Source: Octopus bimaculoides
Taxonomy: Eukaryota
Direction of reading: 5' to 3'
Assembly: GCF_001194135.2 (NCBI RefSeq)
Contig: NC_069003.1
Span: forward strand, 36,254,225-36,318,224
DNA: 64,000 nucleotides
The notes beneath the pieces are model-generated. The model did not search any database, had not been told where the DNA came from, and saw only the letters and a program-made list of their open reading frames with translations. The position numbers and the translations under genes are program-made. Of this stretch, positions 5,379-34,846 are shown in pieces; the stretch's first letter is position 1; each line of letters starts with the position of its first letter.

Positions 5379-5637
5379 ATGGCAGACGGCTACAAGAGAC
5401 AGTTTTTATTGTTGGTGCTGTGTACATCGTTATGGTTGGAACAGATGTTAGCAGAATCTTATGACGGTCACCAACGAGACGATGGCCAGCAGCAAGGACA
5501 GTATAATAATCATCACCATCACAATCATGATTATTACCATCATCATCAACAGCAGTATCCTTATGACGGCAGCGACCTGTCCGTTTGGTTGGAGAAACAC
5601 AGACTTGCCGAGTACACGGACTTATTGTCATCAGCAG
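5379..5637 (+). CDS. AREL1: AREL1 exon 1: signal-peptide-like N-terminus, His/Gln-rich tract, start of SAM-like domain 1
   Basis: ATG 5379; MADGYKRQFLLLVLCTSLWLEQMLAES...DLSVWLEKHRLAEYTDLLSSA; donor G|gtaagt at 5638, phase 1. Confidence 0.8.
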
Positions 5638-8600
5638 GTAAGTACAGTTGAGTTTTTCAGGACACGGGTCAGGGTTCTGTTCGTTTGGGGGTTTGGCAGC
5701 TTAGGGTTACGACTTCCACCTGGTGACGGAGGAAGTTTGATCAGTGTCGTAGGCTTTTCGGGGTTAAAGTTCAAGAAGTTGTTTGGAATGGAGAACGGTG
5801 ATTTGGCGGGGACGGGACGAGAGCCCGTGCTTCAATTAATCGTCTCTTGCAAGTTATTGTGCTGCGAGAGATTATTAGTTTGCGAGATTGGATTAAAATT
5901 GGACAGTTTTTTTGTTTTGTTTTTTTGCAAAGAAAGACTTGTATTTAATCGCATTTAGGGTAGCCTTGACAGCTGGTGGTCTGGTTGTGAGAATTAACTT
6001 TGGGTATTGTTTTAGATTAGATTAGAAACAAGAAAATTTTTTAAACTCCAGTCAGAAGCAAGACGGTTGCAGCATGACTGCATGTCTTACTATCTCAACT
6101 TGTGAAAATCATAGAAATCAGTGGAACTGGTGAAGTCTTTAAACGTTTAAAAATAAAAAATCTAAACAAATCCCGGTTCATTTCCAACTTCTTTTATATA
6201 TATGTGTGTGTGTGTGTGTGTGTATCATCATCATTATCATCATTTAACATCTGTTTTCCATGCTGGCATGGGTTGGATGGTTTGAAAGGAGCTGGCGAGA
6301 CTGGAAAGCTGCCCCAGGCTCCGTTTGTCTCTTTTGACATGGTTTCTACAGCTGGATACCCTTCCAAATGCCAACCACTTTACAGAGTGTACTCGCTGCT
6401 TTTTATATTGCACCAGTGGGACCAGCACAAGTGCTTTTCACCTGTGTGCTGGTTCTTGTTTAAACCAATGCCATTGTTTTCGAGTGTTTACTTCAAATAA
6501 GCACAAACGTGGCCATGTGGTTGAAAGGCTCAATTTACCACCATGTGGTCTTAGGTTCAGTCCCGATGCATGGCACCTTGGGTAAACGTATTCCACTGTA
6601 GCCCCAAGTCAACCAAAGCCCCGTGAGTGAATTTGGTGAATAGAAACTGTGTGGAAGCCCTTCAGATTGCGTGTGTGCCTTTGTGTTTGTCCCCCATCAC
6701 TACTTGACAGCCAGTGTTTGGTTTGGCAAAAGAAACTAAGAGAAAAAGACCCAGGCTTAAAAAGAAAATGTACTTGGGTCAATTCATTCAACTAAAAATT
6801 CTTCAAAGTGGTGCTCCAGCATGGCCACAGTCCAATGTTGAAACAAGTAAAAGGATAAAACAGAAAAAAGAAAAACCATAACCACTCCATCTTTTCTTTT
6901 CCCTTCAGACCCTTTGTCTGTCCTTCTTGTTTCAAAACAGTTGTGTGTAATTTCAAAGAGTTTTGGTTGCTATTTCATGACAGGTCAAGCTACTGCATAG
7001 AAGACACCATGTTGGGTGAGGAATATAATTCTTCTGAGGTCAAAGGTTGTAGGTCAAAGGTTGGCTACTTGTGTATTTTGATTTGACAGAAATACACCAA
7101 CCGTCACAAACGTTGCTATATTTGACATGTTGGATTCATAACCTCTCCACTGCCCCACCCAGGCATCATTCAGCTGTGGGTTGTAGCTTTAGAAGCATTG
7201 AAATCCAGTCTGTTCAGTCATTGTCCAAAGCTTGCTAACCTGTGGTCATCACTGTCCTTATTTTAACAGGTATTGTGTGCTTAAGACTACTTTATCCAAT
7301 AAGTGGCTACTTTTTCTTCTTTAAAATGGTCAGGGTGTGATTTGAGGGACATTGGGCTACTATTTTTAGCAGGTCAAATAACCATAAAGAAGCTTCCTTG
7401 TTAGCTTTTATAAACACTCTGTGTGTGTGTGTTTCTGTCTGTCTGTGTGCGTACATGTACACACATAGCCGAGTGGCTCCACCTGTCACCATACAGATTG
7501 AAATCATATAAATTGTTGGAGATATATTCTTAACCTTTTTGTTTTGTATTTATTTTGTATTTCTGCCTTTGTTTGAGTTAATTATTAAAATAACGAAGGA
7601 TTTATTAATTTAACTTTCTCATTATCAAGCTGGAGTCTGGAACCAATTAGCATAGAATTTTGATGGAAGGTTATAATTTAGCCCTTTAGCACTGAAACCA
7701 GTCATATCCGGTCAGAATACTCTACCTGTTTTAGGTTCAAATTGACCAGATCTGGCCTCTCACACCTACCCTACAATGTCATGTTAAAACTATAACACCA
7801 CATCATCAAAATCACAAAGTTATAACACAATGAATGAGTAATTCAAAGCAATAACCCCTGACCCCTTTGCAACTGTGCCACATGTACTGTTAAGGTCACC
7901 ATGCAGTTCACAGGACTACAAACCCTGAGAGAGTGGGGTCAGCTTCATAGTAGGGGACAATGGGGCTACTATAAGTTAAAAAAAGCAGATAAGAAATGCA
8001 CCAACAGAAAACAGACACAGAAGGTTGCCAAGTCCTTATCAGTTGCGTCTGTTTTCCGTTTGTGCATTTATTCCATGTTTCTGAACTTATTTAATTAATG
8101 TCACGTATTGTCTCTTATTTTGTTTACAGTCAGGGTTTTTATATGTGTGTGTGTGTACATGTGGTGCCACATGAAAAGCACTGGTGCTGGTGCCACATGA
8201 AAAGTGCCCAGTCCACCTTGTAAAGGGGGTTGGCATTAGGGAGGGCATCCAGCCATAGAAACCATGCCAAAACGGACAACTGGAACCTGGTCCAGCTCTC
8301 TGCTCTTGCCAGTTCCTATCAGACTGTCCAACCCAGGCCAGCATGGAAAACTGACCTTGAATGATAATGATGATGGTGGTGGTGATGATGATGGTGATGA
8401 CACAGAGCTAGCTGAGAGATCTGATATTCTTCTCGTTGGTAAATAATCATGCATTAATGATTTATTAGTGTTCATAACAAGTAAAAACTGTTAGCCATCT
8501 AAATTATCAATTATCTCCAAATGTCTTCAGTGCAACAGTGTAAGCTGTTGCCATATTTATACTCTCGGCTACTCTCCCCTCCACCACTGGCCTTAACAAC

Positions 8601-11600
8601 CTTCACCTCCCACCTAGTCACCTCTCATAATAATAACTTTACTTGGTAGTTAAACACTGCCAACATACTGGGGCCAGCCTCTTTCCCATCTGCCTCAAAC
8701 TACCACCCTAAGATTCCCTCTCTCTCTCTCCCTCTCTGTATCTCTGTGTGTTTCTCTTTCTCTTCATATCACTTGATTTGTTGTAAATGAATGTCATTCT
8801 TTTCCCTGTTTTCTCCGAGAACATCCAAGGCCAAAGGGAAATATTACAAGTAAGGGTTGGTGACAGGGAGGGCACCTGGCCATCAAATACCTGCCTCAAT
8901 AAACTCCATCCGACTGCTGCAAGCAGGGAAAGGTGGACGGTAAAATAATGTTTTGGACAAATGGGCCGTGCCCGTAGTTTTTGCTCACCGTAGGGGACTA
9001 GTGGAATTAATGTGGTTTAGATTTTTAAGAGTACATCCATTCTGAGGACAAAGTCCTTGACGTGCGTCCTGGTCAGAGTGGAAGCAGAATAAGGTTGATA
9101 AGAAGAGAAAAGTGGAATAATAAGTTGAGAGTGCCTTAGTGAAGATAGCCCAGACAAACTAGTTGGCACTGCGAAACACAGAGGTCACTGCTCTGACTGT
9201 AGAAATGGCAGCCACAGGGTGGAGTAGTGTTTTGATCTGCAGATTTATAGCAGCAATCAGCCAAGAAGCCTTCCTGTGACTTCACGGGAATGTTATCTTC
9301 TTGTCTGATCACAACTCTTCTCTGTTTATCTTTATCTTTTCTGCTGTTTGGTTTTGGACTTTATACTTTGGTCCAATTTCTTGATATTTGTTATTTTGAT
9401 TACCTTCGTGCAACTGAAGAGCAAACACAAAAGGATTATTGCTCTTATAAAAAAAGGAACTGAAGTGTGACCATGCTGGGGCACAACTTCCTAAGGATTT
9501 TCCTTGTTCCTGTCGATGCCAATACTTATTTTAATTTTATTGATTCCTTTTAGAAAAAATGTAGAATATACCAAAGAGTGGTACCAAACCCAGAACCCAC
9601 ATGGCTCCAAAATAAACTTCCCAGGCTCAATTTTTTTGTTTTAGCAAGGTTACTACAGCTGGACGCCCTTCCTAACACCAACCATTTTACAGCGTGTATT
9701 GGGTGCTTTTGTGCAACACTGGCACAGGATGGGCCCCATGGAGGCAATGACGAGTGACCAAGACCTTTTGCCAAGCCACGGGAAACCATAGTCATGGCTG
9801 ATGCCGGTGCCACGCAAATGGCACCCATTCTGGTGACACATAAAAGCATCCGTTACATTCTTGGAGTGGTTGGTTTTAGGAAGGGCATCCAGCCGTAGAA
9901 ACCATTCCAAATTAGGCAATGAGCTGGCAGAGGCGTTAGCACGCCGGGCAAAATGCTTAGCGGTATTTCGACTGCTGTTACGTTCTGAGTTCAAATTCCG
10001 CCGAGGTCGACTTTGCCTTTCATCCTTTCGGGGTTGATAAATTAAATACCCATGAAACACTGGGGTCGATGTAATCAACTAGGCCCCTCCCCACAAGATT
10101 TCAGGCCTTGTCTCTTTAGTAGAAAGGATTATTATTATTATTATTAAACTAGACATAGATGTGGCTGTGTGGTAAGAAGCTTGCTTCCCAACCATATGGT
10201 TCCAGGTTCAGTCCCACTGCCTGGCACCTTGGGCAAGTGTCTTCTATTGTAGCCTTGGGTCAACCAAAGCCTTTTGAGTGGATTTGATAGATGGAAACTG
10301 AAATAAGCCCATCATATATATATGTGTATGTACGCATGTATTTGTCTGTGTTTGATCCCCCCCCCCATCGCTTGACAACTGGTGTTGGTGTGTTTATGTC
10401 CTCTATATATATGTATTTATGTATGTATTTATGTATGTATGTATATATGTATGTATGTATGTATGTGTATATATGTGTGTGTGTGTGTGTGTATATACAG
10501 AGTGAGAGATATCTCTCTTTCCATATATATGTGTGTGTGTATGTGAGAGACAGACAGACAGACAGTAAGAGCTGTTGCATGTTTCTTTTTTTATTTTATT
10601 TAATACCCCCCCACCATCCCCGTCCAATTCTTTATGCCAATTATTTTTCAGACAAATGTTGCCTGCAATATGTTTTAACACATGTATAACTGTAAGCGTG
10701 TGTGGGTGGCTGGGTGTGGGTGTGTATTCAGATTTTTTCTTTTTCCTATCCATTTCCATGTTACTCCCATGTCTTTCATTGATTCGTTATGTTTTTATTA
10801 CTTTTTTATTGTATAATAACGATGATAAACAACAACTTATTTTAGGCCGTAACCCTTCTCCTATTGTGTTATTGTCTTTTATCGTATTTCATGTTAATCT
10901 CTCGTTTCTCTCAAGTAAACACCATCGACCAACAACAACAATAAAATAATGTTTGAAAAGGAAGCAAGACAAACAAAAAAATGAATATATTTTACTTTTT
11001 TTTACTTCAAATAGTTGTTATTTCGGTTGATTTGTGGTTTGTAATTGCAGCCTCTCTTTATTTGCAAAATAAACTTTATTATTCAGGGATAAACAAACGA
11101 TTATTTGATTGTGGCTGACCCACAAGAGGCAAAGATGTAGAAAAATATATTTAAGGGGAAAAAAAAGAAAAGAAAAATTTTACAATGTTATGGAAGGCAA
11201 TAAGTGCATTAATTATTCGACCATTTTCCTGTGAACAAGCGTTCTTTTACTCTTTCACTTGTTTCAGTCACTGGACTGCAGGTCATACTGGAGCACTGCC
11301 TTGGAATGGTTACCCCAGGAATTATTTTTTAAAGTCTAGATCTTAATCTATTAGATCCTTTTATCGATCTGCTACATTAAAGGGACATAAATAAACCAAC
11401 ACTGGTTATCAAGCAATAGGGGATCAAACACACACACACACACACATGCAAATAACAAGTCTCTCAAAATGCCTGTCTGCCAGATTCACTCTGAAGGCAT
11501 TGGTTGGCCCAGGACCACAGTAAAAGATACTTGCTCAAGGTGCACGCTGTAAGATTGAACCCCTACAAACCCAGTCAGCTGCATCATACAAATGGTAATT

Positions 11601-11976
11601 TAGGTGTCAGTAGCGATTTGTGGGATTTAAGCCAAGACATTCTAGTTTAAAAAATCAAAAGCCTATAACTGAAAGAGTATATGTCTAGCATGCAGGTCCC
11701 CTCGTTCAGGTCCTCTCGTTCCAGCTGTTGTTTATCAAAAATGAAAAACTTGTATTAAAATCAAATTTGCAACATATATGTAATCACCAGTGTGTGTGTG
11801 TGTGACCCCTATATAGAGAGAAAGCAATATATATACCATCTTTCAAGCTGTTTGTCATAAAAAAAAAAATTTATATTAAAATCGAATTTGTTATATGTAT
11901 GTACATATATATATGTGTGTGTGTGTGTGTATTATATATATGTTCCATGCCAGCATACACACACATCTCTGTATGT

Positions 11977-12022
<46 letters not shown>

Positions 12023-15000
12023 CATATGTACTTGAGCTGTCTCTCATAAAAATGAAAAACTTTTCAGATCGAATTTGTTCTTTACATTCCTTGAAGAAAT
12101 GTCAACACCTGGTGTTGAACATGTTGGAATTTGTACGGCCTACCTTGATTCGTTACCATTCCAATTATGACAGTAACAGATGATACGGTGTTCCTTTGTA
12201 TAATATTGTGGCCTCAGCCCCAACCTAGTCAGCAGATGGCAACAATTTTACATTTAACAATTTAGTGTCTCTGGTGCCAAATAAAATATCTTTATAACTG
12301 TCACATGGTAGAAAAGCTGCAGCACACACACACACACACATCCATATTTATATATATATATGTATGTTTGCATGTATGTTTCTATGTATGTATGAATGAA
12401 TGACAGGTTTCTTTCAGTTTCCATTTACCAAATCCACTCATCATACTTTGTGCTTGTGTGTCAGTGTGTCCATAATTACAACTGGTTATTTTGGTTATTT
12501 ATAATAATTATGTGTAATTAATAATTGATTATTCTTCGTTATTTTCGTAACCCCCAGGCGTCTCTTCACTTGACCAGTTTGCTGCCTTCGATGAAAAGAA
12601 ACATAAAAGTTTCCAAGTCCTTTCCACACTGGAACTGGGGAAGATCCGAAGGGCCATTAACCTGCTGCAAGGTGAGAAACAACTGCAGGAGTGGTTACAC
12701 ACTCGGGGACTCCTTAACTACTTTTCCAGGTGAGTTGGTTGCACTTTCCTAACACAATAAGTTGAACAAATTAGTAGAGTCGTTAACACAGTGGATAAAA
12801 TGCTTTGCCATTTTTGTTTGGAGACCCTCTACCTTCAGCGGTATTTGCTTGGGGCCCTCTGCCCCCAGATCAAATCCTGTCGAAGTCAGTTTTGTCTTTT
12901 ACTCTTCTGAACTCAGCAAATAAAGTACCTGTGAAATATTGGGTTCCATTCTTCTCTCTCTCTCTCTCTCTCTCCAAAATCTGTACTCGTGATTGAAATC
13001 ACTGTCGTCATTGTCATCATTGTCAGCAACCTTGTTAACATTATTACTATTAATATCTCTCCCCTCTTTTATAGTTTAAAAGCCCTGTCTGTCGAGAATC
13101 TCACCCACCTGAACCAGTTAAAAGATGAACACCTTCGCATGATCACACAACATGATCGCAGCCAAAAGGATTATTTAACTTTTAAGAAAGCAATTGCTGA
13201 TCTCAGGGCGAAAGAGAAGAAAGAACTTGGAAGTATTTACCGTTATTGGGTTGTTTTCGGTAAGAACGACTGCTGCTCTTTTCTGGTTTTGTTTTCATGT
13301 CTGAACCCTTTAATCTGTAATACTATGGGGGACTGCGGCGTATAGGTGTAGGCATAGCTGTGTCAGGGTCAGAAATTAATTCCCCAGCTGTGTGGTTTCA
13401 GGTTCAGTTCCATTGTATGGCACCTTGGACGAATGTCTTTTACTATGGTACCTGGCTAACCAATGTATGCACTGGATTTGGGAGATGGAAACTGAAAGAA
13501 GCACATCGTGTGTGTGTGTGTGTGCTTGCATGTGCATGTGTGTGTGAGAGATTGCATGCACATGTGTATGTGTAAGATTGCATGCGCATGTGTGTGTGTG
13601 CTTGCATGCGTGTCTGTGTGTGCATGTGTGTATCTGACTTGACATCCCATGATAGTTGTAAAACAAATGTTACAGTCATACAAGCAGTGTCCTTCATTTC
13701 CAGTCTTCCATGAAAAACCTGTCTGGTCATTGGGTGTGGGGGACATTACCTTGCTTGAAAACATGTGAGGGTTGATGACAGGAAGGGCATCCAGGCATAG
13801 AAAATCTGCTGCAATGAATTCCGTCTGACCCATGCCAGCATAAAAATGTGGACGTTAAAGCAACAAAATTTGGAAAAAAATTCATTCGCTGCTCTCACTA
13901 TTTTTATATTCTAAACCAAACACGTGGCGTGCCCGAGTGGCCAGTTATTGTAAGGGAGATAATCATTTCTAGATAAATCTCGGTCAGGTCAGATGTTTGA
14001 TCTCCAAACCAAAGAGCAAAGAATGTGATGCACAGAATATAAATGTTTGCTTGTGCTTTTGTTTTGTGTTTTTCCATTCATTAGAAAGATCTTTAAGATT
14101 CTTATTCACAGGCAACCATATTATAAATATTCTAAATCCTTATTGTTATTTCTCCTTCCAGTCTGGTTGATGTTTTCAGCTATTGTGGGCCTTGCTATGA
14201 TGTCATTGTATGGAACAGTGACCTGGTTTCAGACCACGCCAAACAGCAAGACAAGATTTCTGGACTTCTTCATCGGCAAGTATCCAGCGCCTCAGTCTTG
14301 CAGAGTCATTTGGGATTGGACAGAGCCACAGTTTGTTGGCAAAACAATGACCTTTACTGTGAAGGTAAGGACGAGTGTGTGTTGATTTAGTTATCAATGA
14401 AAACTGTTTCCACATTTATGGATGTAGTGTCAAGTTGCATAGCATAAACTGCTTTCAATTTAGCATTTGAATATTTACCCAATTGGAGCAAGTTTTTCTG
14501 GAATATTTTTTTTGTTTTTCAGTTATGCAGAGTTACATCATTTGCTGTCATTTACATAAAGGCTTACGTGTAAATGGCAGCACATGATGTGACTTCTGCA
14601 CAGCTGAAAAAATGACTAATCTTGAAATATTAATGGAACCAGGAATATTTTTAAATGCCAAATCAGAACCAAATAGTGAATATAAACAGGCTAATAAGTT
14701 CACAAAACTGAAACAATAGTGTAATGCCCTGAAAACAATAGTGATGATGATGATAATGATGATGATGATGATTTCTCTTAATTTTTTTCTTTTTTCTTAT
14801 TTTTACAACAACCAAAAAAATTACACTCAAGCAGTTTTATCAAAAAAACGGTAAACCTTACCCAGTGTCAAATTACGACAACATTGTTGTTGAAATTTTA
14901 CACCTTGGTGCCAAGGTGACCACAACAATTGATTTTGGCAGTGAAGAACCAGAAAAGTCAAATGAGGCGAGGGTGTCGTTCACAGTTCACCGTTCCGGAG

Positions 15001-24599: not shown

Positions 24600-24790
24600 T
24601 TTATTGTCATTATTGTTATTGATATTATTATTGTTGTTGTCGTTATTGTTGTTATTATTACTGAACTCTCTTCCTTGTCCCTTTCAGCTTCAACCAGTTG
24701 TGTCTCCCAGATTATGATTCCATCGACAAATTCCACAAAGCCCTAATGATAGCAATTAATGAAGGCAACCAGGGATTTGGAATGGTCTAA
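5379..24790 (+). CDS. AREL1: Apoptosis-resistant E3 ubiquitin ligase 1 (AREL1/KIAA0317-like HECT E3), 19 coding exons, 974 aa, with extra N-terminal signal peptide and tandem SAM-like domains
   Basis: join(5379-5637,12558-12729,13075-13259,14162-14364,14835-15072,15841-16004,17206-17374,18217-18350,18711-18788,19274-19418,19810-19931,20685-20760,21433-21548,21865-22044,22314-22442,22776-22964,23250-23336,23971-24146,24688-24790). All introns GT-AG, phases consistent, 2925 nt. Motifs match recalled human AREL1: SCRVIWDW, FYQKNGKPYP, KPKKVYVYMSPK, FTFRVCPSTK, GGSETFQDK, LDWGGLRREWF, YFETDDPELY, LLQFTTGCSQLPPGGF, PTAHTCFNQLCLP. Confidence 0.95.
9915..10146 (+). mobile_element. tRNA-derived SINE (family A), full length with (ATT)n tail
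   Basis: gagctggcag..gttagcacgccggg..aaatgcttagcggtatttcg..gttctgagttcaaattccgccgaggtcgactttgcctttcatcctttcgggg. Other copies at approx. 1508-1706, 1707-1875, 17690-17845(-), 32475-32650, 41895-42000, 59612-59780(-). Confidence 0.85.
12558..12729 (+). CDS. AREL1: AREL1 exon 2: rest of SAM-like 1, start of SAM-like 2
   Basis: cccccag|GC; GVSSLDQFAAFDEKKHKSFQVLSTLELGKIRRAINLLQGEKQLQEWLHTRGLLNYFS; AG|gtgagt, phases 1 to 2. This frame is not in the ORF track. Confidence 0.82.
13075..13259 (+). CDS. AREL1: AREL1 exon 3: SAM-like 2, start of TM
   Basis: ttttatag|T; LKALSVENLTHLNQLKDEHLRM...FKKAIADLRAKEKKELGSIYRYWVVF; G|gtaag. Confidence 0.85.
14162..14364 (+). CDS. AREL1: AREL1 exon 4: TM helix, start of filamin/Ig-like region
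   Basis: ccttccag|TC; VWLMFSAIVGLAMMSLYGTVTWF...PQSCRVIWDWTEPQFVGKTMTFTVK|gtaagg. Confidence 0.92.
14835..15072 (+). CDS. AREL1: AREL1 exon 5: filamin repeat
   Basis: aagcag|FYQKNGKPYP...VSFTVHRSGEYLISVLVGFMHIKGSPFKKSFQP G|gtaagt. Confidence 0.92.
15841..16004 (+). CDS. AREL1: AREL1 exon 6
   Basis: ttattccag|GC; AIDATKTKFMNYSSTVVCTLGTSHPLMIETRDMFGN...KIRVRE|gtaaga. Confidence 0.92.
17055..17177 (+). repeat. 30-bp pyrimidine-rich minisatellite, about 4 visible copies, running into an assembly gap
   Basis: Unit cctccccatctttcccgctctctctctctc. Confidence 0.9.
17206..17374 (+). CDS. AREL1: AREL1 exon 7
   Basis: ctccacag|TGTNCRHNPVTQIFY...FQAVVTYGDVKLKNGEFNILVLN T|gtaagt. Confidence 0.92.
17853..17911 (+). 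repeat. (AAT)n microsatellite
   Basis: Direct reading; similar tracts at 4110-4145, 18096-18199, 24545-24660 (ATT) and 34988-35019. Confidence 0.95.
18217..18350 (+). CDS. AREL1: AREL1 exon 8
   Basis: gttgccag|TA; NDTTRVKKNL...WYEARLLSCNHERLEKPKKVYVYMSPK|gtaagt. Confidence 0.92.
18711..18788 (+). CDS. AREL1: AREL1 exon 9
   Basis: ttcttgcag|QLTLKEYYFFLFSKKLFTFRVCPSTK|gtaaga. Confidence 0.93.
19274..19418 (+). CDS. AREL1: AREL1 exon 10
   Basis: ttttccag|FYFNGFINQYDNEPVFTIDDGSQPPVVLAAKERNIIAATFTSFLLKNI G|gtaaat. Confidence 0.93.
19810..19931 (+). CDS. AREL1: AREL1 exon 11
   Basis: cattccag|GA; GSETFQDKQNFFNHEIRQLHHKRAHDRLQFTTNRHNILQS|gtaagt. Confidence 0.93.
20685..20760 (+). CDS. AREL1: AREL1 exon 12, HECT start
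   Basis: ttttcag|SYKVTKNFDVSDWCRNFEITFFGEE G|gtaact. Confidence 0.93.
21433..21548 (+). CDS. AREL1: AREL1 exon 13, HECT
   Basis: ttttttag|GT; LDWGGLRREWFEILCTELFDPNASGLFKRFAADDSQGL|gtgagt. Confidence 0.95.
21865..22044 (+). CDS. AREL1: AREL1 exon 14, HECT
   Basis: ctccacag|VHPNNKRLLTQKPKYYEFAGKIVAKCLYESSLGGTYKQLVKAKFSRSFLAQLIGLRVNYK|gtgaga. Confidence 0.95.
22314..22442 (+). CDS. AREL1: AREL1 exon 15, HECT
   Basis: tttgcag|YFETDDPELYKTKILYIEENDVSDMELTFSEEEYNEETGQLIR|gtgagt. Confidence 0.95.
22445..22549 (+). repeat. 5 x 21-bp minisatellite starting inside the AREL1 exon 15 donor site
   Basis: Units gagtagacactccaaagtgtt / gagggggaactccattatgtc / aagtagacactccactttgtt / ctgtagacattccattatgtt / gagcagacactccattatatt. 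Confidence 0.9.
22776..22964 (+). CDS. AREL1: AREL1 exon 16, HECT
   Basis: cttccag|VVDLIPNGSKILVTNKNKLWYL...FLRGLNELIPDNLLSIFDENELE|gtgagt. Confidence 0.95.
23250..23336 (+). CDS. AREL1: AREL1 exon 17, HECT
   Basis: tatttcag|LLMCGTGNYSITDFRQHHSVCGTSPAFGK|gtaagt. Confidence 0.94.
23378..23825. mobile_element. Family C RTE-tail repeat pair, tail-to-tail (23378-23630 + and 23695-23825 -)
   Basis: Shared motifs ggcattaggaagggcatccagc and ccaacccatgc.agcatggaaa..gacgttaaatgatga. Other copies at approx. 6232-6430(-), 8165-8400, 9630-9905, 13700-13860, 16375-16460, 19615-19755, 24200-24300, 31155-31260, 39675-39840, 45200-45360, 52250-52372, 56290-56400. Confidence 0.8.
23971..24146 (+). CDS. AREL1: AREL1 exon 18, HECT C-lobe
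   Basis: ttctgtag|VLDWFWTIVASFTEEQMARLLQFTTGCSQLPPGGF...LPTAHT TG|gtgagt; the catalytic Cys codon is split by the intron. Confidence 0.95.
24688..24790 (+). CDS. AREL1: AREL1 exon 19, terminal
   Basis: ctttcag|C; FNQLCLPDYDSIDKFHKALMIAINEGNQGFGMV, stop TAA 24788-24790. Confidence 0.95.
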
Positions 24791-34099: not shown

Positions 34100-34415
34100 G
34101 TATCACAGCAATACTTCGCCTTTCAGGCGAGATTACAAAGGACCAAGATGCCTGGCGCCTTGCTGTACTCAAGAGCATAAGTGTTAAGACCAGACCAGTT
34201 GCTCTGGTGTCCAAGTGGCTCCATGCAGCAGAGCCTGTATGGCGCCACACAGAAGCACCCAGCATACTACTCTGCAAAGGGGTTGGTGTTGAGAAGGGCA
34301 TCCAGCCATAGAAACCATGCCAAATCAGACTGGAGTCTGGTGCAGCTCCCTCAGCTGGCCAGCCCTGTCAAACTGTCCAACCCATGCCAGCATGGACAAC
34401 AGATGTTAAATGACA
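34100..34415 (+). mobile_element. RTE-related 3' fragment (family C)
   Basis: LRLSGEITKDQDAWRLAVLK followed by the shared aagggcatccagcc.tagaaacc...ccaacccatgccagcatgg...gttaaatga tail. Confidence 0.6.
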
Positions 34416-34846
34416 ACAATAATGACTATATATATACATATATATTATGTATATGTATACATACATACATGTACGAGTATACACACATACATACATGTAT
34501 GCACATATATGTGTGTGTGTATACATAAAATATATACACACACATAAATATATTATAAGCTGCTTTTAAGAAATACACACGGTGCCACCTAATTAGCATA
34601 TCGGCCCAGAATACTCTCTAAACCAGTTCCATTGCACTTACTATGCAGTGGCACTTCTGAATGGCTTCTTATGTGGCTAATAACAGTTGAATCCACTTGA
34701 ATCTAAGAATGTCACCCAGCCTCAAGAAAGCTGTTTCAAGTTGGTGAAATTTGTCGAAACAGAAGGGAAGCAGTTCTATATTTAAGAGATGAATTATTTA
34801 CATTATTTACATTTGATGGATATTTGTCCTCATCTTGTTTGTTGTT

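Follow-up and report, generated by a model that had tools for sequence, protein, structure and literature searches.

A tandem SAM module of ancestral origin precedes the membrane anchor of the octopus AREL1 orthologue and may face the ER lumen

The window analysed here is a 64 000 nt stretch of Octopus bimaculoides DNA, and the region studied within it is best explained as part of the octopus orthologue of AREL1 (KIAA0317), namely its 5′ third; AREL1 is an ER-membrane-anchored ubiquitin ligase of the HECT type. The gene model comprises 19 exons on the + strand, encodes 974 aa and ends at 24790. Exon 1 (5379..5637, aa 1–86) carries the start codon, a leader, a His/Gln tract and helices 1–2 of a first SAM domain (SAM1). 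An in-frame stop precedes the ATG by two codons, and the GT donor is at 5638. Exons 2 (12558..12729, aa 87–143/144) and 3 (13075..13259, aa 144–205) are both in frame, have AG/GT borders and were aligned by tblastn with a decapodiform cephalopod protein. Exon 4 (14162..14364, aa 206–273) encodes the rest of a TM helix, the conserved motif SKTRFLDFFIGKYPAPQSC and the first part of the filamin repeats; it also has AG/GT borders, shows 60% identity to the decapodiform protein by tblastn, and contains W-x-W and VGKTMTF columns that are invariant or nearly so in the orthologue alignment. Joined together, exons 1–4 form 819 nt, or 273 stop-free codons, with AG acceptor and GT donor borders and an in-frame junction to the rest of the gene. 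The 273 aa run on into 15 more exons (exons 5–19, 14835..24790), all with AG/GT borders, that encode the filamin repeats, a middle region and the HECT domain. The acceptor of exon 5 is a tandem NAGNAG (14832 or 14835); the distal site, which yields the 974 aa product, is the one used in the RefSeq model of O. vulgaris and in the protein derived from decapodiform transcripts.

Judged from the sequence, the reading frame of exons 1–4 is far above chance expectation, because the 15 further exons that continue it belong to a model collinear with an independent 957 aa cephalopod protein (decapodiform P0001). The O. vulgaris RefSeq protein (P0075) shares the N terminus MADGYKRQ and is 98% identical to our model over its full length. 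Furthermore, four independent RNA-derived contigs of a decapodiform cephalopod (4.1–4.5 kb) encode the leader, both SAM domains, the TM helix, filamin repeats and HECT domain in one uninterrupted ORF, with an in-frame stop 5′ of the start codon. The splicing of exons 1–3 in frame onto the AREL1 body, proposed in an earlier note made from the DNA alone, is thus borne out by the exon borders, the stop-free frame and the collinear orthologues.

The same note had named the gene AREL1, and the body of the protein agrees. Pfam detected Filamin (37 bits) and HECT (260.9 bits); the HECT domain spans aa 662–973, with catalytic Cys941 encoded on the + strand by a split codon (24145–24146 plus 24688). 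In a search of solved structures, its best match was the human AREL1 HECT domain (6jx5, E 2.6e-152), the next family scoring 1.9e-63, so that the HECT sequence clearly marks the protein as the orthologue of human AREL1. The human protein resides in the ER and works at ER–lysosome contacts; its TM segment is found right at the N terminus, and the HECT domain is cytosolic, with a HECT epitope accessible to trypsin on intact membranes (PMC12864862). As the earlier note stated, characterized human AREL1 lacks a SAM domain and starts with the homologous TM helix (PMC12864862).

The octopus protein begins MADGYKRQ-FLLLVLCTSLWL-EQMLAES. The hydrophobic core of this leader, FLLLVLCTSLWL (5403..5438, + strand, aa 9–20), is preceded by K6 and R7 and lies within a 13-residue uncharged stretch. 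Its N-side flank is positive and its C-side flank acidic, giving a net charge difference (C minus N) of −6; 19 of 22 orthologues show a negative value, an N-in signature. Nearly all full-length orthologues have a hydrophobic N-terminal segment. That of the octopus looks closer to a signal peptide than to a membrane anchor, since its Kyte–Doolittle score is weak (maximum 1.72). Downstream lies a low-complexity linker rich in His and Gln (5469..5555, + strand, aa 31–59), which reads NNHHHHNHDYYHHHQQQ followed by YPY; the earlier note, whose leader and TM helix are real, gave this tract one Q too many. The linker DNA contains an imperfect (ATC)13 repeat (5509–5548), and the insertion is found in octopods only, being missing from the decapodiform protein and all non-octopod orthologues. 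Its AlphaFold2 pLDDT is below 50, and it is 73% identical to O. vulgaris, against 95–100% in the adjoining regions. The tract is best explained as a disordered linker derived by slippage of a trinucleotide repeat and without a conserved role, which does not support the function suggested for it earlier.

Both SAM domains, each with the WL...Y repeat read from the sequence, are real by the combined results of Pfam, hhalign, AlphaFold2 and Foldseek, in agreement with the earlier note. SAM1 (5574..12670, + strand, aa 66–124) is interrupted by the 6.9 kb intron 1 and exceeds the curated Pfam cut-offs for SAM_2 (31.6 bits, cut-off 20.5) and SAM_1 (30.6 bits, cut-off 23). SAM2 (12677..13213, + strand, aa 127–190) is interrupted by intron 2; its profile matches the SAM sequences of SHIP2, Caskin and SARM1 in the PDB, and hhalign relates it to the SAM1 profile with a probability of 97% (E 1.2e-10). 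Structure prediction used the O. vulgaris protein, which is 96% identical to the window protein in the modelled stretch. Both domains were predicted with pLDDT >90, SAM1 with a five-helix pattern, and the top 50 Foldseek matches were SAM domains without exception, tandem SAMs ranking high among them. In the model, SAM1 helix 5 continues into SAM2 helix 1, and from SAM2 helix 5 one uninterrupted helix extends through the TM segment (residues 173–220 of the O. vulgaris protein). An N-L-T sequon reported at N152 is indeed present within SAM2 (13097..13105, + strand) and in O. vulgaris; it is not conserved, reading NLG in Argonauta and the decapodiform, and is best explained as incidental. No Cys pair or sequon in the SAM region was conserved among the orthologues compared, and our literature search found no paper on the AREL1 SAM pair.

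The TM helix YWVVFVWLMFSAIVGLAMMSLYGTVTW (13244..14226, + strand, aa 201–227) is interrupted by intron 3 and reaches a Kyte–Doolittle maximum of 2.53; it and the leader are the only two hydrophobic segments of the octopus protein. MAFFT aligned it with the LMFYVIGG segment that precedes the filamin repeats in fish, the segment with which we take human AREL1 to begin. On this alignment and this human start, the octopus TM helix is homologous to the N-terminal TM helix of human AREL1. Fish and shark orthologues carry an extra conserved hydrophobic segment directly before the human-type TM.

The order leader, SAM, SAM, TM, filamin, HECT was found in molluscs, an annelid, a brachiopod, a starfish, a wasp, teleosts and a shark, and a sea anemone fragment contains the module as far as the filamin start. 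In this Exaiptasia fragment, Pfam SAM_1 scored 33.9 bits, with its best stretch on the region equivalent to SAM2. The extension is already part of RefSeq models from many phyla, fish included, and the O. vulgaris protein has precomputed SAM_1/SAM_2 Pfam annotations; several mollusc gene models begin at a Met inside the TM helix. The survey shows that leader, tandem SAM and TM constitute an ancestral metazoan module, kept in octopus and absent from the studied mammalian AREL1. Its presence from sea anemones to fish makes it an overlooked ancestral feature rather than the lineage-specific extension that had been considered.

Given two hydrophobic segments and a necessarily cytosolic HECT domain, the simplest topology puts the SAM pair on the non-cytosolic side of the membrane, which would be the ER lumen because the human orthologue is ER-resident. 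By homology, the pair most likely faces the lumen rather than the cell surface, a placement that we judge about evenly balanced because the topology signals conflict. In this view the leader would serve as a signal sequence, with cleavage near A25/S27 or retention as an N-in anchor, and would bring the SAM pair to the lumenal side of the ER membrane. Transfer would then be stopped by the TM helix, the direct continuation of the last SAM2 helix, leaving the filamin repeats and HECT domain in the cytosol. The lumenal SAM pair would self-associate, as SAM domains usually do, and in this way would act through the rigid SAM2–TM helix to determine how the cytosolic ligase oligomerizes or clusters. 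Taken as a whole, this is our best explanation, and we consider it about as probable as its negation. The N-glycosylation sequons favour this reading only weakly: orthologues have 4 between the two hydrophobic segments against 13.7 expected, and 80 in the cytosolic body against 93.5 expected, and the depletion carries little weight given the relatedness of the sequences. The lack of a conserved Cys pair or sequon in the SAM region speaks against it.

A possible, if doubtful, alternative accepts the same gene and domains and places the SAM pair in the cytosol, where the SAMs would oligomerize the ligase or recruit partners like ordinary SAM scaffolds. The N-terminal segment would then be a reverse signal-anchor with a short lumenal N terminus, as in cytochrome P450, and the SAM pair would lie between two anchors, the second region leading the chain back to the cytosol as a hairpin or as two helices. 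SAM domains are as a rule cytosolic. In most orthologues the N-terminal segment is strongly hydrophobic, has a long run of 16–28 uncharged residues and follows a very short N tail, features that favour translocation of the N terminus. When K and R only are counted, 13 orthologues have more of them in the TM flank on the SAM side than in that on the filamin side and 4 have fewer, and in most orthologues K+R after the leader equals or exceeds K+R before it; by the positive-inside rule, both counts point to a cytosolic SAM side. In fish and shark, the second region consists of two clean hydrophobic segments with R-D between them, and three hydrophobic segments with a cytosolic HECT domain would make the SAM pair cytosolic. 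The second region is also sized for two passes in Pinctada (48 residues), Mytilus (36) and the cnidarian fragment, and several gastropod and chiton second segments have P, PG or PPG at the centre. Against this alternative, the second region of the window protein is 23–28 residues and modelled by AlphaFold2 as one straight helix, those of the wasp and annelid are just 21 residues, below hairpin length, and the leader charge difference described above runs the other way. A conserved leader directly before SAM1 is also hard to explain unless the SAM pair crosses the membrane, because the second segment alone anchors human AREL1.

We think it very unlikely that the protein, as in the strongest form of the earlier note, is a type I receptor-like ligase of the cell surface, with a cleaved leader and an exterior His tract and SAM pair that would sense a ligand or metal. 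The octopus leader does fit a cleavable signal peptide, in that the n-region is positive, the h-region has 12 residues and candidate cleavage sites follow A-E-S or M-L-A on our reading of the sequence, and His-rich tracts can bind metals. However, the human orthologue resides in the ER and acts at ER–lysosome contacts (PMC12864862), the His tract is disordered, octopod-only and divergent between two close Octopus sequences, the region has no conserved cysteines or glycosylation sites, and in most orthologues the leader resembles an anchor rather than a cleaved peptide. Still more improbable, to the point of being negligible, is an annotation artefact in which exons 1–3 belong to another gene or are chance frames and AREL1 starts inside exon 4, as in mammals. 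The length of intron 1 and the mollusc models that start within the TM helix would suit such an error; yet those short models start mid-helix and look truncated, cDNA-like contigs of a related cephalopod link a homologous N terminus to the body without interruption, the same architecture recurs in eight distant lineages, and both SAM folds are predicted with high confidence. The observation made in the earlier note is confirmed, and its interpretation is partly supported.

Among known systems, the tandem-SAM scaffolds (Caskin1/2, SARM1, AIDA-1/ANKS1B and liprins) likewise have two consecutive SAMs and were among the top Foldseek and profile matches, single SAMs matching with a target-normalized TM-score of about 0.66–0.76 and an rmsd of 2–4 Å over ~60 residues. 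They differ in the arrangement of the two SAMs (rmsd 10–15 Å over the whole tandem) and in being soluble and cytosolic, whereas in AREL1 SAM1 runs helically into SAM2 and SAM2 into the TM. Sphingomyelin synthase 1 and SMSr (SAMD8) are ER/Golgi membrane proteins with a SAM adjoining membrane helices, and provide a precedent for a cytosolic SAM pair; they are unrelated enzymes with the SAM at a free cytosolic N terminus and no hydrophobic leader.

SAM domains are nearly all cytosolic or nuclear, and to our knowledge STIM is the sole established lumenal case. STIM1 and STIM2 span the ER membrane once, carry a signal sequence and have a lumenal SAM immediately ahead of the TM; their cytosolic effector is clustered from the lumen. 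If the lumenal topology holds, AREL1 resembles their EF-SAM arrangement as an ER protein with a signal sequence, a SAM adjoining a single TM and a cytosolic effector whose clustering would be set from the lumen. It differs in having two SAMs instead of one, a HECT ligase as effector, a lumenal location that is putative, and no EF-hand or other sensor domain beside the SAMs, where Pfam finds SAM only; profile and Foldseek searches showed no relationship to STIM beyond the generic SAM fold. With mammalian AREL1, the octopus protein shares the TM helix, the juxtamembrane motif, the filamin repeats, a K-rich KPKKVYxY stretch and the HECT domain with its catalytic Cys and, we infer, ER anchoring and a cytosolic HECT domain, to which it adds some 200 residues before the TM: the leader, the disordered linker and the two SAM domains.

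We modelled the AREL1 gene of the window by tblastn and splice-site search, using a 957-aa cephalopod protein as the guide. The resulting model has 19 exons, all with AG/GT borders, and its stop codon ends at 24790. The first four exons, on the plus strand at 5379-5637, 12558-12729, 13075-13259 and 14162-14364, are each preceded by AG and followed by GT, as the earlier note had placed them; when joined they form an open frame of 273 codons, with an in-frame stop two codons upstream of the ATG. The acceptor of exon 5 is a tandem NAGNAG site (caag|cag, 14829-14834). Use of the distal AG (14835), which is the acceptor chosen in the Octopus vulgaris RefSeq model and in a decapodiform transcript-derived protein, gives a protein of 974 aa, and the proximal choice adds a single Gln (TFTVK-Q-FYQ). 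Assembly gaps, seen as runs of N, lie at about 875-1520, 16470-17100, 19100-19150, 20530-20600 and 57050-57350. Three of these gaps fall inside AREL1 introns and, since the model is collinear with its orthologues, apparently no AREL1 exon has been lost to them.

The predicted protein carries a Pfam HECT domain at aa 662-973 (260.9 bits), which matches the HECT domain of human AREL1 (6jx5) with an E value of 2.6e-152, compared with 1.9e-63 for the next family, NEDD4L. The AHTCFNQ motif containing the catalytic Cys941 is present and conserved. Further upstream, a hydrophobic helix at aa 201-227 forms the predicted membrane anchor, and a filamin repeat follows directly on its C-terminal side (Pfam Filamin, aa 249-347, 37 bits against a cut-off of 26.9); Foldseek also matched this part of the AlphaFold2 model to filamin domains (E 6e-7). 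The octopus membrane helix aligned with the LMFYVIGG segment that precedes the filamin repeat in fish. The HECT match, the catalytic cysteine and the position of the filamin repeat after the membrane helix identify the gene as an orthologue of AREL1 (KIAA0317). The precomputed Pfam annotation of the O. vulgaris protein, which is 98% identical, and that of the 957-aa decapodiform protein include the AREL1_PH-like family (PF25916); the scan of the window protein did not report this family at E ≤0.001.

The G+C content of the window is about 25-43% per 2 kb, mostly 35-41%, with many microsatellites and several assembly gaps. On the minus strand, at 50184-55220, exon-sized ORFs match Pfam TUTase (35.9 and 32.9 bits), MTPAP-like_central and PAP_assoc (34.9 bits), and this region is a predicted terminal uridylyltransferase/non-canonical poly(A) polymerase gene in a tail-to-tail arrangement with AREL1. 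The AREL1 introns and other parts of the window also contain a dispersed repeat, found in both orientations at about 6200-6500, 8140-8490, 23600-23770, 34180-34420, 52250-52430 and 56150-56480; its translations recur (...PCWHGLDGL... and ...SNPCQHGKQ(M/V)LNDD...), and a SINE or some other transposable element is its probable identity.

Comparison with other cephalopods indicates that the N-terminal extension is a real part of octopus AREL1. The window protein is 78% identical to the Argonauta protein and 74% identical to the 957-aa decapodiform protein, with 51% identity across aa 58-272. Four contigs of 4.1-4.5 kb, independently assembled from sequencing runs, encode the decapodiform protein in one unbroken ORF, and each has an in-frame stop 18 codons upstream of the start codon; as the genomic gene has 19 exons, these contigs are cDNA-like. 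We consider it extremely improbable that the extension is an annotation artefact. Several mollusc models, from Lottia (P0081), Patella (P0082), Elysia (P0089 and P0090) and Physella (P0093), are 754-825 aa in length and start at a Met within the membrane helix. These are clearly truncated annotations that miss the 5' exons for the leader and the SAM pair, and because they begin mid-helix we rejected them as a sign of a mammal-like short isoform.

The proposal that the extension contains two SAM domains was borne out by several approaches. SAM1 (aa 66-124) scored above the Pfam cut-offs for both SAM_2 (31.6 bits, cut-off 20.5) and SAM_1 (30.6 bits, cut-off 23). Octopus SAM2 taken alone falls below the Pfam threshold (SAM_TNK, 13.8 bits); a SAM1 profile built from 15 orthologues aligned to the SAM2 profile with an hhalign probability of 97% (E 1.2e-10), and, searched against PDB sequences, the SAM2 profile picked out SAM domains from SHIP2, Caskin-1/2 and SARM1. 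A sea anemone fragment gave an above-threshold Pfam SAM_1 hit of 33.9 bits, with its best stretch on the second repeat. A phmmer comparison of the 273-aa sequence with the PDB was discarded, being contaminated by His-tag matches to the His/Gln tract.

AlphaFold2 folding of the O. vulgaris orthologue, both as a 353-residue construct and as the isolated SAM pair, produced two five-helix units with pLDDT >90. When the isolated pair was compared with the PDB by Foldseek, the best 50 matches were all SAM domains, including the tandem SAMs of Caskin1/2, SARM1 and AIDA-1, and single-SAM matches had TM-scores of about 0.66-0.76 (normalized to the target) at 2-4 Å; the 353-residue model returned filamin matches only. 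In the predicted structure, helix 5 of SAM1 runs on into helix 1 of SAM2, and helix 5 of SAM2 continues unbroken into the membrane helix.

To chart the distribution of the module we used an exhaustive HMMER search with the 273-aa N terminus and a separate search with the full-length query. Word-indexed protein searches started from the N terminus alone, or from an alignment of 15 sequences of the extension, returned nothing useful, probably owing to low-complexity and hydrophobic words swamping the candidates. HMMER found the same front end in full-length proteins of the wasp Venturia (RefSeq isoforms X1-X4), the starfish Acanthaster, the brachiopod Lingula, the gastropod Batillaria and the teleosts Etheostoma and Sander (isoform X1, 1019 aa), and N-terminal fragments from a shark and from a sea anemone. 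Further orthologues came from the full-length query: Haliotis, Gigantopelta, a chiton, Littorina, Babylonia, Mya, Dreissena, Mytilus and the annelid Ridgeia, with 87-95% coverage, and Pinctada, with 76%. No tetrapod long form was evident among the short fragment matches of the HMMER representative search. Nearly all orthologues with the module have the N-terminal hydrophobic segment, with SAM1 beginning about 10 residues on; the two hydrophobic regions are usually separated by about 150-180 residues, and the second is followed by a conserved SK..IFDFFTG.YPAPQ.C motif and by W-x-W, with which the filamin repeat starts.

This distribution shows that the ancestral animal AREL1 had a leader and tandem SAM domains before the membrane helix, an arrangement kept in most sampled phyla, including fishes, and that mammalian AREL1 is a reduced form. 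The possibility that the extension is specific to the octopus lineage, raised in the earlier note, was not borne out; the extension is ancestral, and public protein sets already include it. Between the window protein and the decapodiform protein the module is 45-54% identical, compared with 76-88% for the filamin, middle and HECT regions, and its rate of evolution is two to three times that of the body. This faster evolution accounts for the observation that, among the orthologues found with the full-length query, Pfam flags SAM only in cephalopods and in one RNA-assembly protein (P0085). Fast evolution, together with the location behind long introns, also explains why gene models often miss the module and domain surveys list only 'filamin + HECT'.

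Two further features of the extension that the earlier note had listed, a histidine-rich tract and an N-glycosylation sequon at N152, were not upheld as functional. The His/Gln tract holds an imperfect (ATC)13 repeat, is an insertion seen in octopods only, is predicted by AlphaFold2 to be disordered, and is the least conserved part of the protein between the window and O. vulgaris (73%). As an octopod-only repeat, it was rejected as a conserved metal site. Argonauta and the decapodiform protein both have NLG at the position of the N152 sequon, and a conserved role of N152 in glycosylation was likewise rejected. AREL1 introns contain, at 22230-23009 and 17759-18220, long open frames rich in His, Asn and Ile that derive from trinucleotide and AT-rich repeats, which shows that low-complexity, coding-looking tracts like the His run of exon 1 are common in the octopus genome.

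To our knowledge, all functional work on AREL1 concerns the mammalian protein, and covers IAP-antagonist turnover, K11/K33-linked chains, ER-lysosome contacts and Purkinje-cell survival. The human sequence presumably starts with the fish-type LMFYVIGG segment. Human AREL1 is ER-resident and tethers lysosomes via V-ATPase subunits; trypsin treatment of intact membranes destroys its HECT epitope, and its TM lies at the very N terminus (2025 EMBO J, PMC12864862). The earlier contrast with a mammalian protein beginning at the TM, without SAM domains, was right. Two surveys of HECT evolution describe the KIAA0317 family with filamin repeats only (PMC2837046, PMC3673628), and the 2013 survey found a filamin/ABP280 repeat N-terminal to HECT in this family only (PMC3673628). 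The searchable literature on AREL1/KIAA0317 and SAM yielded no account of the SAM pair. The architecture is thus present in databases, and partly auto-annotated, yet appears undescribed in that literature. It is a variant within a known family of ligases, apparently overlooked, whose interest we judge moderate, and greater should lumenal placement of the SAM pair be shown.

The earlier note had presented AREL1 as a receptor-like ligase with its SAM pair in the lumen or outside the cell. In human AREL1 the chain passes through the membrane from the lumen to the cytosol. Octopus AREL1 has just one hydrophobic segment besides the membrane helix, namely the leader, and AlphaFold2 draws the second segment as a single straight helix. 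With only two hydrophobic segments, a straight second helix and a cytosolic HECT domain, the simplest topology is one in which the SAM pair lies in the ER lumen, where the leader would serve either as a cleaved signal peptide or as an N-in anchor. The leader has a hydrophobic core of 12-13 residues, preceded by K and R and followed by an acidic stretch with A-E-S, which gives an n/h/c layout with small residues at -3/-1 that would suit a signal peptide. Of 22 orthologues, 19 have a negative net charge difference across the leader, a pattern that indicates an N-in orientation. Sequons, counted over related sequences, number 4 in the SAM region against 13.7 expected, and 80 in the cytosolic body against 93.5; this scarcity would fit exposure of the SAM region to the glycosylation machinery, but is only suggestive. 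We regard a lumenal SAM pair in octopus AREL1 as evenly poised. A cell-surface version of the protein, with the SAM pair outside the cell, seems very unlikely to us; human AREL1 is ER-resident, and this part of the proposal was not upheld.

A cytosolic SAM pair is an alternative that we hold to be less likely than not. SAM domains are almost always cytosolic. The K+R count is richer on the SAM side of the second segment in 13 orthologues and poorer in four, and in most phyla the leader is long (16-28 uncharged residues), strongly hydrophobic and anchor-like. Sequence topology rules conflict: net charge gives an N-in leader, and K+R counts give a cytosolic SAM side; neither was taken as decisive. 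The single further membrane-spanning helix of a type I protein is found in octopus, where one hydrophobic segment, predicted as a continuous helix, lies between the SAM pair and the filamin repeat, whereas fish and shark have two segments, carrying an extra conserved one directly before the human-type helix. This extra segment (W[TS][IV][AV]GA[LV]IF...), at aa 177-218 in Sander (P0072) and aa 210-250 in the shark Heterodontus (P0007), and also present in Etheostoma (P0014), is separated by R-D alone from the helix that matches the human N-terminal TM, and the mammalian start Met appears to match the Met after R-D-L. Three spans combined with a cytosolic HECT domain would place the SAM pair in the cytosol in fish and shark. 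The extra segment is at odds with the two-span topology proposed for invertebrates, and we could find no single standard topology that reconciles the vertebrate and invertebrate patterns.

With a lumenal SAM pair, a cytosolic HECT ligase could come under control from the ER lumen, and STIM would cease to be the sole case of lumenal SAM domains; if it is cytosolic, the pair would still be an unstudied oligomerization or recruitment module of AREL1. STIM has an EF-hand next to its SAM domain, whereas octopus AREL1 does not: Pfam scans of aa 1-273 and of eight orthologues found no EF-hand or other domain, and the sole extra sequence is a disordered linker. The analogy with STIM is reasonable but unproven. 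We tentatively speculate, at somewhat less than even confidence, that ancestral AREL1 represents a second protein class, besides STIM, whose SAM domains face the ER lumen, and in which a tandem SAM rigidly joined to the TM would set the clustering of a HECT ligase at ER-organelle contacts. Mammals would then have discarded the module and come to rely on a cytosolic low-complexity region for condensation, with the extra segment of fish possibly marking an intermediate or flipped topology.
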